Shown here: positions 41,976 through 51,510 of the stretch, one piece after another
Numbering within the stretch: position 1 is the stretch's first letter
How the letters are laid out: every line of letters starts with the position of its first letter
Origin: Eutreptiella sp. 'Long Island Sound 2002'
Taxonomy: Eukaryota > Protista > Euglenida
Reading direction: 5' to 3'
DNA: 64,000 nucleotides
NCBI GenBank assembly: GCA_964036045.1
Contig: OZ038378.1
Coordinates: forward strand, 22,444,001-22,508,000
Notes under the pieces: generated by a model
What the model was told of the DNA's origin: nothing
Databases searched by the model: none
What the model saw: only the letters and a program-made list of their open reading frames with translations
Made by a program: the position numbers and the translations under genes

Positions 41976-43127
41976 GCCCCCCAGAGGCGCCCGAGGACGT
42001 GAGCAGGGGAGGGTCCGTCGAGGGTCTGGGGAGTGCGGCCGTCTTGTGGGGGCGCAATGCGACGATTTGGGTGCCTTGCCGTACTAGGTTGGGTGCTTCA
42101 AACACAAACACATGATTCAGCACATCTGGAATGTGCATGGAGAGTGGTCCACAGAAGACACCATGGTGCTCCTCATTATGGATTGCAGTAATGCCTTCCC
42201 CACGTTGTCTCACAACTTCGCCAGGGCAGTGCTGGACTTCATTCCGCTCAAGCAAGGGTTCGTGGACCTAATTTTGTCCTCACTATTGTCCTCTTGTTTC
42301 TTTCTAGTGGGCAATTCTGTCAACAAATCACATGTTTTCCGGCCAGGGGCCGGAATTCGCCCAGGGGACCTGTTTTCCCCTCTCCTTTTTTCGTATGTGC
42401 TTCCCAGCTATGTGTATAGCGACCTAGTCGGCTATCAGACATCAGACATCAGACTTTTATGGACCATTACCCCCCCCCCCCCACCCCAACACCCTTTCTA
42501 CCCCCCCCCCCCCCGTGTCAGACTTCGCCCCCCCCCCCCCGTGTCCCCCCCAATATCAGACTTGTCCCATTGTCACCACACCCTTGAGCTGTAGAAGTGG
42601 GTTGTGGTCTCGACCCTAGCGTCTGAAACCCAACCAGTGCTTGCAACCCCTTCAATGATGGTACGTGCCCCCCCCCCCCCCCCACCCCACCCCACCCCAC
42701 CCCACCCCATCTCTCTGACTCAAACCGATCGGGGGGCTCATATGTGACTGAAGACAAGTGGGAACAGAATCCTGATGTCTGGCCCCAGCAACCTCACCTG
42801 AGCTAATCGGGTCAGTTTTGCTGGTGGGGTGGGTTGGTGGGGGTTCATCGGGTTGGGCCGGAACTGTGGAGAGGGGGGGTAGTGGGTTTCGAGCACGGCA
42901 CAGCACAGCACGGCACAGCACAGCACATCACAGCACATCACAGCACAACACAACATACAGCATAGCACAACATATTACAGCACAACACAGCCCCTACGGC
43001 CGCCCAAGAGAGCCTCCCTCCCTCCCTCCCTCCCACCCTCCCTCCCCTCCCTCCCTCCCTCCCACCCTGTCATTTCCCTGCTTGTATGGTTGAGGTTAGG
43101 GAGGGTATGCCTGTTTTTCTTTTTCAG

Positions 43128-43436
43128 GTTTTTTTTTCTAGTTGGTTGGCGTACGTGTTTGGGTTGGTGGGACCCTCTATGACGATTGACACTGCATGTT
43201 CATCCTCGTTGGTGGCAACGGATGCTGCATGCAAGGCCATGTATGCGCATGACTGTGAGGTGGCCGTGGCGGTGGGAGTAAACCTGCTCTTCAATTTCGA
43301 GGTGTTCATCAGCTTTCGTGCAGCCGGGATGCTATCCAGGAAAGGCCGATGTGCGACATTCTCCGATGATGCGGATGGGTATTTGCGCGAAGAGGGGTGT
43401 GGTGCGGTGTTGCTAAAGCCACTATCGAGTGCTTTG
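43128..43436 (+). pseudogene. Type I polyketide synthase ketosynthase (KS) exon, captured fragment
   Basis: GPSMTIDTACSSSLVA (catalytic Cys codon 43197-43199), AVAVGVNLL, GMLSRKGRCATF..ADGY.R.EGCGAVLLKPL; preceded by ctgtttttctttttcAG acceptor (43126-43127). No further PKS exons seen in the window. Confidence 0.9.
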
Positions 43437-45876
43437 GGGGTGTAGACCCCCCAAATATTTGACGGACATACATCCGTCAAATATTTTGGGGGTCTACACC
43501 CCCCAGATAACTGACGCATGGGCATGTGTCAAATATTTGACGGACATACATCCGTCAAATATTTTGGGGGTGTAGACCCCCCAAATATTTGACGAGGCCC
43601 CATCCGTCAAATATTTTGGGGGTGTAGACGCCCCAGATGACTGACGCATGGGCATGCGTCAAATGTTTGACGGACATACATCCGTCACATGTTTTGGGGG
43701 TGTAGACCCCCCAAATATTTGACGGACACACATCCGTCAACTATTTTGGGGGTGTAGACCCCCCAAATATTTGACGGACATACATCCGTCAAATATTTCG
43801 GGGGTCTACACCCCCCAGATAACTGACGCATGGGTATGCGTCAAATATTTGACGGACCTGCATCCGTCAAATATTTTGGGGGTGTGGACCCCCGAAATAT
43901 TTGACGGACACACATCCGTCAAATATTTGGGGGGTCTACACCCCCCAGGTAACTGACGCATGGGCATGCGTCAAATATTTGACGGACATACATCCGTCAA
44001 ATATTTTGGGGGTGTAGACCCCCCAAATAGTTGACGGAACCCCATCCGTGAAATATTTTGGGGGTCTACAGCCCCCAAATATTTGACGGAACCCCATCCG
44101 TGAAATATTTTGGGGCTGTAGACCCCCCAAATATTTGACGGAACCCCATCCGTGAAATATTTTGGGGGTGTACAGCCCCCAAATATTTGACGGAACCCCA
44201 TCCGTCAAATATTTTGGGGGTCTACAGCCCCCAAATATTTGACGGAACCCCATCCTTGAAATATTTTGGGGGTGTACAGCCCCCAAATATTTGACAGAAC
44301 CCCATCCGTCAAATATTTTGGGGGTGTACAGCCCCCAAATATTTGACGGAACCCCATCCGTGAAATATTTTGGGGGTCTACAGCCCCAAAATATTTCACG
44401 GATGTGGTTCCGTGAAATATTTGGGGGCTGTAGACCCCCCAAATATTTGACGGAACCACATCCGTGAAATATTTTGGGGGTCTACACCCCCAAAATATTT
44501 CACGGATGTGGTTCCGTGAAATATTTGGGGGCTGTAGACCCCCCAAATATTTGACGGAACCCCATCGGTGAAATATTTTGGGGGTGTAGACCCCCAAAAT
44601 ATTTCACGGATTTGGTTCCGTGAAATATTTGGGGGCTGTAGACCCCCCAAATATTTGACGGAACCCCATCCGTGAAATATTTTGGGGGTGTACAGCCCCC
44701 AAATATTTCACGGAACCCCATCCGTGAAATATTTTGGGGGTGTAGACCCCCCAAATATTTGACGGAACCCCATCCGTGAAATATTTTGAGGGTGTAGACC
44801 CCCCAAATATTTGACGGATTCCCATCCGTCAAATATATTGGGGGTGTACAGCCCCCAAATATTTGACGGATGGGGTTCCGTGAGACATTTGGGGGCCGTA
44901 GACCCCCCAAATATTTGACGAAACCACATCCGTGAAATATTTGGGGGCTGTAGACCCCCCAAATATTTGACGGAACCCCATCCGTGAAGTATTTTGGGGC
45001 TGTAGACCCCCCAAATATTTGACGGAACCCCATCCGTCAAATATTTTGGGGGTGTACAGCCCCCAAATATTGGACAGAACCCCATCCGTGAAATATTTGG
45101 GGGCTGTAGACCCCCCAAATATTTGACGGAACCCCATCGTGAGAAGTTTTGGGGGGTGTACAGCCCCCAAATATTTGACGGAACTCCATCCGTGAAATAT
45201 TTTGGGGGTGTAGACCCCCCAAATATTTGACGGAACCCCATCCGTCAAATATTTTGGGGGTGTACAGCCCCCAAATATTTGACGGATGGGGTTCCGTGAA
45301 ACATTTGGGGGCTGTAGACCCCCCAAATATTTGACGGATCCCCATCCGTGAAATATTTGGGGGCTGTAGACCCCCCAAATATTTGACGGAACCCCATCCG
45401 TGAAATATTTTGGGGGTGTAGACCCCCCAAATATTTGACGGAACCCCATCCGTCAAATATTTTGGGGGTGTAGACCCCCAAACATTTGACGGAACCCCAT
45501 CCGTGAAATATTTTGGGGGTGTAGACCCCCAAAATATTTCACGGATGTGGTTCCCTGAAATATTTGGGGGCTGTACACCCCCCAAATATTTGACGGAACC
45601 CCATCCGTGAAATATTCGGGGGCTGTAGACCCCCCAAATATTTGACGGACACACATCCGTCAAAGACTTCGGGGGTGTAGACCCCCCAAATGTTTGACGG
45701 ACATACATCCGTCAAATATTTTGGGGGTCTACACCCCCCAGGTAACTGACGCATGGACATGCGTCAAATATTTGACGGACATTCATCCGTCAAATGTTTT
45801 GGGGGTGTAGACCCCCCAAATATTTGACGGACACACGTCCGTCAAATATTTTGGGGGTGTAGACCCCCCAAATATT
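43433..45876. repeat. 52-bp palindromic satellite (~45 units)
   Basis: Unit tttgggggTGTAGAccccccaaatatttgacggaACCCCAtccgtcaaata; period 52 (gacccc at 45421 and 45473); occasional third palindrome tgacgcatgggcatgcgtca. Confidence 0.95.
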
Positions 45877-48800
45877 GTGGGGGCCTATGGGGGCCTGTGG
45901 GGACCTATGGGGACCTATGGGGGCCTATGGGGCTCTTTGGGGACCTATGGGGGTCTATGGGGGCCTATGGGGGCCTATGGGGGCCTATGGGGACCTATGG
46001 GGACCTATAGGGGCCTATGGGGGTCTATGGGGACCCATGGTGGCTTATGGGGCTCTATGGGGACCTATGGGGGCCTATGGGGACTTATGGGGACCTATGG
46101 GGGCCTATGGGGGCCTATGGGGACCTATGGGGACCTATAGGGGCCTATGGGGACCTATAGGGGCCTATAGGGGCCTATGGGGACCTTTGGGGGCCTATGG
46201 GGGACTATGGGGGCCTATGGGGGCCTATTGGCATTTTTGGGGACCTGTGGGGGCCTATGGGGACCTATGGGGACCTATGGGGGCCTATGGGGGCCTATGG
46301 GGGCCTATGGGGGCCTATGGGGACCTATGGGGGCCTATGGGGGTCTATGGGGACCTATGGGGACCTTTGGGGGCGTATGGGGTCCTTTAGGGGCCTATGG
46401 GGACCTATGGGGGCCTATGGGGACCCATGGGGGCCTATGGGGGTCTATGGGGACCTATGGGGGCCTATTGGCACCTATGGGGACCTATGGGGGCCAATGG
46501 GGGCCTATGGGGGCCTATTGGCACCTTTGGGGACCTATGGGGCTCTATGGGGGCCTATGGGGGCCTATGGGGACCTATGGGGACCTATGGGGGCCTATGG
46601 GGACCTTAGGGGGCCTACGGGGGCCTTTGGGGGCACGTGGGGACCTATGGGGACCTATGGGGGCCTATGGGGCCTACGGCGGTCTATGGGGACTTATGGG
46701 GGCCTATGGGGGTCTATGGGGACCTATGGGGGCCTATTGGCACCTTTGGGGACCTATGGGGACCTATGGGGGCCAATGGGGGCCTATGGGGGCCTATTGG
46801 CAGCTTTGGGGACCTATGGGGCTCTATGGGGGCCTATGGGGGTCTATGGGGACCTTTGGGGGCCTATGGGGGTCTATGGGGACCTTTGGGGGCCTATGGG
46901 CGCCTATGAGGGCCTATGGGGGCCTACGGGGGCCTATTGGCACCTTTGGGGACCTATGGGCATCTTTGGGCACCTTTGGGGGTCTATGGGGACCTTTGGG
47001 GACCTATGGGGACCTTTGGGCACCTTTGGGGACCTATGGGGTCTATGGGGACCTACGGGGACCTATGGGGGTCTATGGGGACCTATGGGGACCTATGGGG
47101 ACCTTTGGGCACCTTTGGGGACCTTTGGGGACCTATGGGGGTCTATGGGGACCTACGGGGACCTATGGGGGTCTATGGGGACCTTTGGGGACCTATGGGG
47201 ACCTTTGGGCACCTTTGGGGACCTTTGGGGACCTATGGGGGTCTGTGGGGACCTACGGGGACCTATGGGCACCTATGGGGACCTATGGGGACCTATGGGG
47301 GCCTATGGGGGTCTACGGGGACCTTTGGGGACCTATGGGGACCTTTGGGCACCTTTGGGGACCTATGGGCACCTATGGGGATGGGGATCTATGGGCACCT
47401 ATGGGGATGGGGGCCGATGGGCGACTCATCGGCATCTAGGGGGGCCTATGGGGGCCTATGGGGGCCTATGGGGGCCTATGGGGGCCTATGGGGGCCTATG
47501 GGGGCCTATGGGGACCTATGGGGGCCTATGGGGGCCTATGGGCACCTTTGGGGGTCTATGGGGGCCTATTGGAGCCTATGGGGGCCTATGGGGACCTATG
47601 GGGACCTATGGGGGCTTGGGGGGACCTTTGGGGGGCTATGGGGGCCATTGGGACCTATGGGGACCTATGGGGAGCTATGGGGGCCTATGGGGACCTATGG
47701 GGGCCTATGGGGGCCTATGGGGGCCTATGGGGGCCTATGGGCACCTTTGGGGACCTTTGGGGGCGTATGGGGTCCTTTAGGGACCTTTGGGGACCTACGG
47801 GGGTCTATGGGGACCTATGGGGGTCTATGGGGACCTATGGGGGCATATGGGGGCCCATGGGGGTCTACGGGGACCTTTGGGGACCTATGGGGACCTTTGG
47901 GCACCTTTGGGGACCTATGGGCACCTTTGGGGACCTATGGGCACCTATGGGGATGGGGGCCGATGGGGACTCATCGGCATCTAAGGGGGACCTATGGGGG
48001 CCTATGGGGGCCTGTGGCGGCCTATGGGGGCCTATGGGGACCTTTGGGGGTCTATGGGGAGCTATTGAGGCCTATGGGGGCCTATGGGCACCTTTGGGGG
48101 CCTATGGGGGCCTATTGGGGCCTATGGGGGCCTATGGGGGTCTATGGGGACCGATGGGGGCCTATTGGCACCATTGGGGACCTATGGGGGCCTATGGGGA
48201 CCTTTGGGGGCCTATGGGCGCGTATGGGGGCCTATGAGGGCCTATGGGGGCCTACGGGGGCCTATTGGCACCTTTGGGGACCTATGGGCATCTTCGGGCA
48301 CCTTTGGGGGTCTATGGGGACCTTTGGGGACCTATGGGGACCTTTGGGCACCTTTGGGGACCTATGGGGGTCTATGGGGACCTACGGGGACCTATGGGGG
48401 TCTATGGGGACCTATGGGGGCCTATGGGGGTCTACGGGGACCTTTGGGGACCTATGGGGACCTTTGGGCACCTTTGGGGACCTATGGGCACCTATGGGGA
48501 TGGGGACCTATGGGCACGTATGGGGATGGGGGCCGATGGGTGACTCATCGGCATCTAGGGGGACCTATGGGGGCCTATGGGGGCCTATGGGGGCCTATGG
48601 GGGCCTATGGGGGCCTATGGGGACCTTTGGGGGTCTATGGGGACCCATTGGGGCCTATGGGGGCCTATGGGCACCTTTGGGGGTCTGTGGGGGCCTATTG
48701 GGGCCTATGGGGGCCTATGGGAGCTTGTGGAGGCCTATGGGGGCCTGTGGGGACCTACGGGAACCTATGGGCACCTTTGGGGACCTACGGGGACCTATGG

Positions 48801-48984
48801 GGGCCGATGGGGACTCATTGGCATCTAGGGGGACCTTTGGGGACCTATGGGCACCTCTGGGGACCCATGGGCACCTTTGGGGGCCTATGGGGGCCTATGG
48901 GGGCCTATGGGGACCTATTGGCACCTTTGGGGACCTATGGGCACCTTTGGGGGCCCATGGGGGCCTATGGGGGCCTATGGGCAC
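45877..48984. repeat. G-rich ~10-bp satellite (GGGGCCTATG / GGGACCTATG) with higher-order structure
   Basis: Roughly 300 units; marker gccgatgg..gactcat(c/t)ggcatcta at 47413, 47959, 48532, 48803. Confidence 0.95.
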
Positions 48985-51099
48985 CCTTTTGTTTGCCACT
49001 TTCCTTGCTCCCACATTTCCCCCATTTTCCCATTTTGGTGTTCAAAGTCTTTTTTACTTTTGTACTGCCATGTTTCTGATTGTCCAAGGTGGTTCCCCAA
49101 TGATTTTTCAATTGTGTCCTCCCTTTTTGTTTTTTTCATTTGGGGGGGGGGGTTGATTTAGATTTAGGCATAGTTTCTCCCAATTTCCTTTGGGCATTAG
49201 ACCCCTAGACCCACCTCCAGTAGATAAGAACATCAGACATCTTCTTGGACAGACCGCACACACAACATCCCTTATCAGACATCAGACATCAGACTTTATA
49301 CACATAGCTGGTGCTTCCTTTGTAATTTTCCCGTTGAATCACACCCCGGGGGGGGTGGGTGGCATTTATCTGTATCTGGACGACCTATTGATCACCATCC
49401 CGTAAGGGTGCATAGACAGGGCTGTTACATTTGTAATGAAATACCTTAGCCGTTTTTCGGCCATTTCAGGCTTGCACATCAACCTAGGCAAGTCGGCATT
49501 TGTACTAAAAGGACACATAGGTCCCGACGTGCTGCAACAGTTCAAAAAGGTTGGACTGCAGCAACAACAATATGTCAAACATGTGGGTGTCAAGGTAGGA
49601 CACCTTATGGTCAAGGAACCCTATTTAGGCCCCCTTCCAGGAGGCATTCTGTAGAGCATGCATCTTCTCACACTTAGGTCTCAGTGTAGCAGAAAAACGT
49701 ATACTGCTTAAGGTGTGGGTCTTGCGTACACTACCGCTGACTGCAGGTACATATGTGGCAGACAGGTCAATCATATACACAGTGCACCAGGTATAACATG
49801 TCCTTTTTGGCTTTGAGAGTCGGGGGCTTACCTGCCATCAACGGTCACAAAGCAAGGAAAGCGTAGGTTATGAGCTACCTCTGCCTGAGCCCTAGCTCCA
49901 AGCCCAAGGGGCACTGGCCAGTGTCTAGTTTTTCTCATAGCCTTTGCGCTTCCCACATAACGTGCGAGCACACTTCGAACATTTTTGTGTACGCCATGTC
50001 GTGCTGCCGCAAGCCTCAGGCCTAGTGTGGCTTCGCCAGGGAAAGTGCCACAGTTCACCCTGGGCTACATTGCTACCTGCCTACAAGCCCATTCTCACTA
50101 ACGCGGCGCCATGTTCGGGTGTGCTCCACAGGGGATATCATGGAAGCACTGCTGTGGCATTGTTGCCTTTTTGCCAATGAACACGACCACACATATTTCA
50201 ACACTCCCCTCCTTCGGGCAGGTGTACACAAGGTGAAGTGTCTATTTTCAGCGGCAAGCTAGCCCCACCCACAGCTCATCAAGCACCTCCCACCCTGCTC
50301 ATCAAGCACCTCCCACCCTCATGGAGGTCCTTTCAAGCTTTCCAAAAACTCCCACTCAATGACCGGTCCGTCCTGTCGGTGTGGGTAGGGATGTGGGCCA
50401 AAGCCCAATCCCTTGCACTAGTGGCTCCTTCCAAGCGGGTAACGCACAGCCTGGAGTCGGACGCATGGGCCGTGTTTGGAATACCCCCCTTCCTCCCTCA
50501 TTGCGGCACTTCATTTACCAGAGTATGTGGTGTAAGCTGTTGGTTAGGGTTAGAATCTTCCCTTGGTTGCAAGTTAAAGGCTGTCCACGGTCGGGAAGGA
50601 AGAAATAGTTCGCCATGCCCTCAAGTATTGCAAGTTTTTCAAGCATGTGCAGTGAGCAATGCAGTCGTGTTTCGGGGACTGGCACATCCAAGGTAAGACA
50701 GGACCATGGGTACAGCTCCCCATTGGTCAAACCCTGCGGATAGTACGAGGCATTATGCTGTGGTGTGCATGCAAGGCGCACCGGGGTGCCTAGTGTGCAG
50801 CATCTATGGGGGCCTCACCTAGCATTGAGGACTTTGTCACCAAGTGGGCCGGGGAGATTCATTTGGCAACCCGGTGGGGGCCACTCAAGCATCGCGGTGA
50901 GGAACTCGCGGATTTTCACGGAATCCTCCTCTTTTTCTTCACGGAGGAGGCAGTGCCACAACGACATGTTAACTGGCGGCAATACTGCCCCATCGCTGTC
51001 CCCGATACGTCTTTTGATCTGAAGCGACAAAGACGGGAAGAGCGCAAGCCCACAGTTGCGGAACAAGTAAAGGCCTTGGTCCGCACTTGCCTCAGGGAG

Positions 51100-51510
51100 G
51101 GGTGGCATACTTTTTTTTTCGATGGGTCTGCCAAACGCTATGATAAATGTGGTTACGGGGGGATATGGATGCTATTTTCCGGGCCAGTGGACTCGCGGCA
51201 CCCCTTGATGAAGATCAACGACAGACCAACGACATGGCGGAACTCAACGCGGCCATCGCAGCCGGCCTCAAGGTTACACAGCGCACAGTGATTTTTGGGG
51301 ACTCTGGATGTGTTCTAGACAACGTTAAAAGAGAAGCGTACAAATGGCGTTGCAATGGTTGGTGCAGTCCAAAAGGCAGAGTACCAAACTCCATGTTATG
51401 GGATGCATTGCTCCAGGTCATCGACTCGAACCCCCATCTCATCAAGTGGGTGTGGTCCCCATGACACCAGGGTATTCCAGGGGACGAGCAGGCAGACGAA
51501 CGGGCTTCAG
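51100..51510 (+). pseudogene. Cellular-type RNase HI domain at LINE C-terminus
   Basis: FFFDGSAK, QTNDMAELNAAI, IFGDSGCV, KWRCNGW..KG.VPNSMLW..L, WVWSP*HQGIPGDEQADERA; one frameshift and one TGA. Confidence 0.85.

Follow-up and report, generated by a model that had tools for sequence, protein, structure and literature searches.

By what route does a piece of a ketosynthase (KS), joined to kilobases of satellite DNA, come to lie in the middle of a decayed retroelement? The question is raised by a 64,000-nt stretch of the genome of the euglenid Eutreptiella sp. 'Long Island Sound 2002' (assembly GCA_964036045.1, contig OZ038378.1, positions 22,444,001 to 22,508,000 of the forward strand), hereafter called the window, to whose full length all positions given without a contig refer; C-numbers denote contigs of this 2.28-Gb genome, and L-numbers loci or termini fetched from it. 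The spliced-leader sequence of Euglena is present 5,458 times in this genome, against 0 for a control, which marks it as one of the Euglena (gracilis-like) type. A preliminary description, made from the letters of the window alone, had proposed a Pack-hAT-like transposon by which an exon of a polyketide synthase (PKS) and two satellites were moved as cargo. The analysis presented here leads to a related reading, which we regard as highly probable: positions 42405-49310 represent a non-autonomous, hAT-like element of the Pack type, whose KS cargo would have been captured once and evolves neutrally, and which would be moved in trans by large relatives encoding a USP-fused transposase-like protein. 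The element and its target are composed as follows.

42112-42396, plus strand: left half of the interrupted, decayed reverse transcriptase (RT) region (weak RVT_1 match, E 0.033, profile positions 67-131)
42397-42404: left copy of the target site duplication (TSD), 8 bp, GTGCTTCC, repeated exactly at the right end
42405-42418, plus strand: left terminal inverted repeat (TIR; A-end), 14 bp, CAGCTATGTGTATA, perfect
42405-42467, plus strand: A-end terminal block common to the large transposase-encoding relatives (BLAST of the 5' part of the element)
42419-43142, plus strand: backbone of the non-autonomous (type-1) subfamily (alignment to KS-less copies)
43143-43440, plus strand: captured KS fragment, short form (PF00109 match and DNA homology to C21)
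43433-45883: palindrome-rich satellite of 52 bp (Tandem Repeats Finder)
45878-48985: satellite of 10 bp, TGGGGACCTA, about 313 units (Tandem Repeats Finder)
48986-49296, plus strand: B-end subterminal region (BLAST of 48960-49318)
49297-49310, minus strand: right TIR (B-end), 14 bp, CAGCTATGTGTATA, perfect
49311-49318: right copy of the TSD, 8 bp, GTGCTTCC, exact repeat of the left copy
49319-49654, plus strand: right half of the RT region split by the insertion (motifs YLDD and SGLHINLGKS; frame shifted by one base, one stop)
51147-51461: RNase_H domain downstream (E 7e-8)

The segment delimited by the TIRs (42405-49310; 6,906 bp) lies inside a decayed retroelement, whose RT motifs PGDLFSPLLF, YLDD and SGLHINLGKS can be read across both flanks, the two halves differing by one base in frame across the TSD; the continuation of the RT over the empty site with a one-base shift, already noticed in the preliminary description, is thus borne out by the motifs and frames of both halves. 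The search for empty-site copies suggested there yielded two older paralogues of the retroelement, 72–79% identical and uninterrupted at the insertion site; the flanks stand side by side at C3:139145334-139145824, about 8 bp from perfect abutment, and at C6:3206685-3207232, about 26 bp from it, contiguity being judged from the coordinates of separate searches, one per flank. Since the flanks are adjacent in both paralogues, the 6.9 kb are an insertion. The perfect 14-bp TIRs and the perfect 8-bp TSD that had been reported were found again at the positions listed above; CAGCTATGTGTATA has only these two matches in the window, with no third even when two mismatches are allowed, and next to it each end carries three ATCAGAC heptamers in tandem (42434-42454 at the A-end and 49274-49294 at the B-end). 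The interior, as previously stated, contains no recognisable transposase: tblastn of the canonical hAT open reading frames (ORFs) of this genome, and of the transposase-like protein of the family itself, gave no match in the 64-kb window. The backbone (42419-43142) contains tracts of poly-C, CCCCA, AGCAC and CCTC, its end being formed by a pyrimidine-rich part ('ctttttcagg...ctagt'), while the two satellites, whose extent had been put at 5.5 kb, together occupy about 5.55 kb, the 52-bp array showing higher-order periods of 104, 208 and 312 bp as well.

The element belongs to a large family. Allowing at most one mismatch, the 14-bp TIR has 1,303 forward and 1,292 reverse matches genome-wide (2,595), against 59 and 60 (119) for a reversed control, which puts the family at about 1,240 elements; the copy numbers given here and below are minimum values or come from a first look. 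Homology to the element of the window sets in exactly at the TIR in 30 fetched termini, and an exact 8-bp TSD is present in nine of 11 neighbouring plus/minus end pairs (the window copy included; ten pairs in separate loci plus a complete 1.4-kb element in L018), the remaining two not being true partners. The genome-wide search for such end pairs that had been suggested thus shows them to recur, the elements with a verified TSD being 1.4 to 31 kb long. The A-end and the B-end are distinct in sequence, and subfamilies can be told apart by how far the homology of the ends reaches inwards. The B-end query (48960-49318) aligns to type-1 copies with 97–98% identity over 351 bp, B-end homology being common to L001, L003, L017, L021, L028 and L030; in the type-2 copies L010, L012 and L026 the alignment is confined to the last 120–170 bp, and in the type-2 A-ends L011 and L025 just the 63 bp at 42405-42467 align, with 98–100% identity. 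The stretch from about 49142 to 49310 is accordingly common to the window element and to the transposase-encoding relatives.

Several copies depart from this pattern. Four termini (L015, L016, L020 and L023, at C1:34280029, 35833599, 50424062 and 53430127) have the same 14-bp TIR and belong to further subfamilies, with GTCTGAA-type subterminal repeats and internal satellites of their own of about 40 bp. L009 (C1:25327663) and L014 (C1:31923989) are termini of another variant, 97.8% identical over 2.5 kb; the alignment runs on for about 1 kb outside the element, and the adjacent 12-mer is the same in both, which indicates a segmental duplication and not two insertions. Finally, L029 (C1:60827878), an A-end, and L030 (C1:60834743), a B-end of one KS-bearing element, lie in the same orientation, and their flanking 8-mers are reverse-complementary (ctatgggg and ccccatag); an inversion after the insertion, one of whose breakpoints lay within the element, would account for this arrangement.

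As to the cargo, residues 14-116 of the open frame at 43086-43445 align to the final 40% of the N-terminal domain of ketoacyl synthases; the KS coding stretch (43143-43436) corresponds to profile positions 150-252 of 252 of Pfam PF00109 (E 2e-35) and includes the DTACSSS active-site motif, which amounts to about 100 terminal residues of this domain together with the active-site cysteine. A DNA query covering 43090-43440, of which 54 bp are backbone, gave 569 first-look candidates genome-wide, and the 40 places scored among them (42 matches) are 91–100% identical; the KS coding part alone gave 107 first-look candidates. At the protein level two classes emerge. The first comprises some 48–52 loci with short open frames (84–265 aa), 69–100% identical over aligned residues 1-98. 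These KS-bearing loci, about 50, are distributed over many contigs, and the junctions are identical in all sampled transposon copies; one shared junction at so many loci means that the KS was captured once. The second class consists of 31 places on the minus strand of C21:8,986,299-9,185,382, 91–95% identical over residues 2-98, and falls mostly within one stop-free frame of 44,620 codons, where the KS C-terminal domain (PF02801) starts 22 nt past the matched piece and the modules recur every 4.5 kb or so. At the DNA level, window positions 43144-43440 are 97% identical to C21:9185088-9185384, the best C21 modules reaching 97–98%, and the homology is restricted to the coding piece of the element. 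Other PKS genes in the genome are at most 75% identical, save a few fragments of 86–92% on C8, C23 and C27; the 98-aa piece matches only multi-module PKSs among protein representatives, with 39–52% identity, a search that is of no help in finding the parent because its ranking is by summed score. Judged from these identities, the parent of the KS piece is the giant, intronless modular PKS on C21, or a lost near-twin of that gene. The earlier claim that a host PKS fragment is carried in the element is in this way substantiated, and the parental gene that a sequence search was expected to reveal has a candidate with 31 modules.

The C21 gene (C21:8,986,299-9,194,067, minus strand), with at least 31 near-identical KS modules, is not the only one of its kind in this genome. 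Further giant PKS frames have 16,441, 14,181, 11,573, 11,534 and about 8,600 codons, and further giant PKS loci are found at C3:76282534-76323003, C7:77351318-77388664, C11:63948406-63974202, C21:25738016-25763812, C8:22234691-22273808 and C8:43660682-43724980. Frames of this size are on the scale of the PKZILLA genes; a literature search found no paper tying PKS genes of that scale to Euglena.

How the KS piece is joined to the element can be read from the comparison of copies with different cargos. The backbone is 88–96% identical in the KS-less copies L002, L005, L013, L022 and L027, as far as 43131-43142, and after its common end ('...ctttttcagg...c(t/c)agt') four types of junction are observed: in L027 (type a), 63 bp ('agagtg...aggtatgtt') are followed by unrelated sequence with a 26-bp repeat; in copies of the L004 type (type b), the same 63 bp are followed by about 475 bp of KS; in the window (type c), 'ctagt' is joined straight to 'tggttggcg' at 43142/43143; in L002, L005 and L022 (type d), a 121-bp tandem repeat comes next. 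Relative to type b, type c is a 220-bp deletion, made up of 157 bp of KS and 63 bp of backbone. When the stretch specific to type b was used as query, eight or nine long-form copies aligned in full and the C21 modules from query position 68 on (93–98%), which places the original left breakpoint at 'aggtatg/ttttgtcaaag'; on the right, homology to the parent extends to 43440 and the satellite unit starts at 43433, the 8-bp overlap being TTTGGGGG. The left edge of the KS in the window copy would thus be due to a secondary internal deletion of 220 bp in a longer capture of about 475 bp, the long form presumably preceding the short one. An 11-bp sequence common to the KS and to the 121-bp repeat, ATGACGATTGA, was considered as the capture junction and rejected, the KS piece beginning 36 bp upstream of it.

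It follows that the description of the cargo as a KS exon with its own splice acceptor has to be abandoned. The pyrimidine/CAG stretch ahead of the KS is backbone and is present also in copies with other cargo; moreover, the parent is one stop-free frame in which the KS C-terminal domain follows 22 nt on, so that there is no exon boundary, and no intron, at that position. The 63-bp piece (L027:2270-2350; L004:680-745, minus strand), missing from the window, where the backbone ends at 43142, is bordered by an acceptor-like ttttcttttccag and a donor-like sequence (ag/gtatgtt), and has the look of a mini-exon taken up by capture, or of what is left of a gene of the element. The joining of different cargos just past this piece suggests a recurrent internal cargo site.

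The same comparison separates the history of the satellites from that of the KS. The 52-bp satellite occurs also in the KS-less L005, after its 121-bp repeat, and the 10-bp array also precedes the B-end in L006; because KS-less copies hold both, the arrays are family components which predate the capture of the KS. Their length differs among copies, and this explains much of the 4–31 kb size range. The idea that exon and satellites had moved together as cargo therefore holds in one part: backbone, KS and satellites do form one mobile unit, with identical junctions at about 50 loci and TSDs of their own (confirmed separately for the window copy and for L003/L004). It fails in the other, the satellites not having been captured along with the KS.

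What enzyme could move such an element is suggested by the type-2 subfamily (L010–L012 and L024–L026), which has the same TIR and agrees with the window copy over roughly the first 60 bp at the A-end and 150 bp at the B-end, and whose interior is unique, non-satellite sequence. Flanked by a perfect TSD, one of these elements (C1:28551232-28580786) measures 29.5 kb; its interior gave 753 first-look candidates, and the 40 scored among them, one being its own locus, are 97–100% identical. In four fetched copies on four contigs, the exact TIR and a near-identical B-end of about 130 bp stand beside a long ORF, which reads toward the B-end and whose stop is about 0.7 kb from the TIR. This transposase-like gene is uninterrupted over 3,279 bp and has 1,916 first-look candidates in the genome; 42 scored copies are 96–100% identical, 25 of them without a stop, with open frames of 1,144–1,635 aa, and on C1 the gene copies lie 0.67–0.70 kb inside B-end TIRs that belong to TIR pairs 21.8, 26.2 and 44.3 kb apart. 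In a 1,549-aa version the N-terminal part matches the USP/UCH domain PF00443 (E 4e-6; 26.9 bits, the cut-off being 23.9); an example of the USP-fused ORF, intronless, is L078:1501-6147 (minus strand), that is C9:22751691-22756337. Database relatives found by a word-index search are limited to ENA (Euglena) data, where P0151 (1,093 aa) heads a cluster of 215 sequences and P0157, 67% identical to it, one of 231; a second one, made with the core and accepting E values as high as 10, returned Euglena proteins only. Apparently the USP-fused ORF family is young, and some copies may be intact. The 20–45-kb elements with the same ends are thus likely to be the autonomous partner of the window element. 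For the autonomous hAT with the same TIR, which it had been suggested to look for, the transposase-encoding relatives are candidates, with the qualification that hidden Markov models (HMMs) do not identify their protein as a hAT. Canonical hATs could not be connected with these ends: 12 loci with a PF05699 match do not have this TIR, none of the listed PF05699 matches on C1 lies inside a TIR pair, and neither the window nor 60 loci gave a tblastn match to canonical hAT ORFs.

PF05699 itself has 1,760 first-look candidates in the genome. Matches to the hAT dimerisation domain (profile positions 17-84) in 302-aa frames recur at a spacing of 1,690 bp at C5:75623820, 75625510, 75627200 and many other places; these 1,690-bp repeats would represent a tandemly arrayed, truncated hAT-derived unit.

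Taken together, these observations are consistent with the following course of events. The element would have inserted into an old, dead retroelement, duplicating 8 bp of the target, most likely moved in trans by the USP-fused transposase-like protein of its 20–45-kb relatives. A piece of about 475 bp of KS would have been copied once from the giant intronless PKS on C21; a 220-bp internal deletion would then have shortened it to 297 bp, and the short form would have spread to some 40–50 loci. The capture itself probably occurred while an excision gap was being repaired, through end joining or template switching, a mechanism proposed because of the short microhomologies at both junctions and of the fixed internal site at which the cargo varies. 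The two internal satellites would be older components of the family, with arrays of variable length in the different copies.

The assignment of the family to the hAT superfamily deserves separate consideration. A short, perfect TIR beginning with CAG, triple subterminal ATCAGAC heptamers, a TSD of exactly 8 bp and an interior devoid of transposase agree with the non-autonomous hAT-type element of the preliminary description. Moreover, P0151 has motifs in the hAT order (LLD338, VD410GASN, CH454VLQ, RW520 and VE784RAIS) with a D-72-D-374-E spacing, to be compared with D-64-D-352-E in a PF05699-positive hAT of this genome; all named neighbours of its core found by a language model are hAT-derived families (0.84–0.89, leads only), and a home-made HMM of the hAT dimerisation domain aligns to the right motif of the partner protein, with an insignificant E of 0.5. 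Several observations weigh against the proposed reading. The partner protein was not recognised by Pfam, by PDB sequence and profile searches or by hhalign to canonical hAT ORFs, and its AlphaFold model, built on a 10-sequence alignment, is unusable (mean pLDDT 32.7); since HMMs do not recognise the protein, the hAT label rests on the TSD, the ends and the motif layout. hAT elements have a weak target consensus, nTnnnnAn; among eight TSDs of the family, a small sample, T is found at position 2 in one and A at position 7 in four. As regards the capture, breakpoints and junction microhomologies derive from alignment coordinates; mobilisation in trans, capture by repair and the precedence of the long form over the short are inferred. 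The lack of recognition by any HMM or profile method, the restriction of relatives to Euglena data in two word-index searches and the target preference not shown by the eight TSDs speak for an assignment of the family to another TIR superfamily with 8-bp TSDs (P-like or Zisupton-like, for instance) or to a new one, in which case the Pack-type behaviour would stand; the exactness of the 8-bp TSDs, the CAG ends with their short subterminal repeats, the hAT order and near-hAT spacing of the motifs, the uniformly hAT-derived named neighbours and the position of even the weak HMM alignment make this unlikely, and from its sequence features the family is very probably hAT or hAT-like.

A different objection concerns the cargo, which might be a functional, selectable exon, delivered with its own acceptor to other genes by a family that shuffles PKS domains. 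The frame of the KS is open in 28 of 31 sampled copies, and a pyrimidine tract and a CAG do precede it; yet the mean divergence of these copies from their consensus is just 1.4% (the window copy is two bases off), so that open frames in such a proportion are expected from youth alone, and the 39 synonymous and 87 non-synonymous changes (dN/dS about 0.71) look like the neutral decay of dead cargo rather than the constraint on an exon of a working gene. Considering further that the CAG stretch belongs to the backbone, KS-less copies included, that folding as a KS is impossible for a fragment covering some 40% of a single sub-domain, that the parent is without an intron there and that no other PKS domain was found in the 64-kb window, a functional exon is very improbable, and the suggested route for PKS domain shuffling is not supported. 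Even less credit can be given to an assembly artefact (satellite collapse or chimeric join), or to a KS belonging to a resident gene cut by satellites: satellite DNA of 5.5 kb is indeed hard to assemble, but the order backbone–KS–satellite recurs with identical junctions on many contigs, the two TSD copies agree perfectly and, in the paralogues, the flanks adjoin each other. A last possibility, speculative and rather improbable though less so than the two preceding ones, is as follows: a fixed cargo site would be rewritten repeatedly in gap repair (by the KS, the 121-bp repeat or other sequences), and the roughly 50 dispersed KS pieces, which are 97–98% identical, would act back on the PKS with its 31 or more modules via small RNAs or via ectopic gene conversion or recombination. 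If this were true, the transposon would have a genuine part in how a gene of PKZILLA scale evolves or is regulated.

With this element, TIR transposons are seen to capture and amplify gene fragments in a euglenid too, as they have mainly been documented to do in plants; the parent gene can be pointed out, along with the breakpoints of the capture, a deletion that followed it and a candidate for the mobilising element, and a family of about 1,240 copies is linked to giant USP-fused, hAT-like elements of the same genome. The element does not show PKS domain shuffling; it does carry a warning for annotation, in that some 50 short 'ketosynthase' matches in Euglena assemblies are transposon cargo and not PKS genes, and the stop-free modular PKS frame of 44,620 codons merits a study of its own. 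Neither hAT families nor gene-capturing transposons were found described for Euglena in a literature search; in the chromosome-level paper on Euglena gracilis, about 32.7% of the genome is assigned to unclassified repeats (PMC11252322).

Among known systems, several are comparable in part. The window element is related by its organisation to the Ac/Ds pairs and to the gene-fragment-carrying elements of plants. In Ac/Ds, short TIRs and subterminal repeats are shared, the TSDs are of 8 bp and the transposase is supplied in trans; likewise, the window element and its large relatives have only TIRs and subterminal repeats in common, with 8-bp TSDs. Unlike Ds, however, it is not a simple deletion derivative, just about 60 bp and 150 bp of the two ends being shared, and the autonomous relatives are here 20–45 kb long. 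The plant elements that carry gene fragments include the Pack-MULEs of rice. Pack-type elements are established, and in maize Pack-hAT clusters can exceed 100 members (Gisby & Catoni 2022, PMC8903248). As in plant Pack-TYPE elements, we find a non-autonomous TIR element with superfamily-typical TSDs, devoid of transposase, carrying a fragment of a host gene and amplified after the capture; the differences are that the host is a euglenid protist, that the cargo is a mid-domain piece of an intronless giant PKS instead of exon–intron pieces and stands beside kilobase-scale internal satellites, and that the putative mobilising enzyme is USP-fused and not recognised by Pfam as a hAT. For the satellites, the closest parallel is offered by Tetris, a DNA transposon of Drosophila virilis whose internal tandem repeats seeded a satellite (PMC4079207). 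Both are TIR elements with an interior mostly made of tandem repeats of variable length, and both disperse satellite arrays; Tetris, in contrast, is of the foldback type and carries no fragments captured from genes, whereas the window element combines two unrelated satellites, of 52 and 10 bp, with a fragment of a gene.

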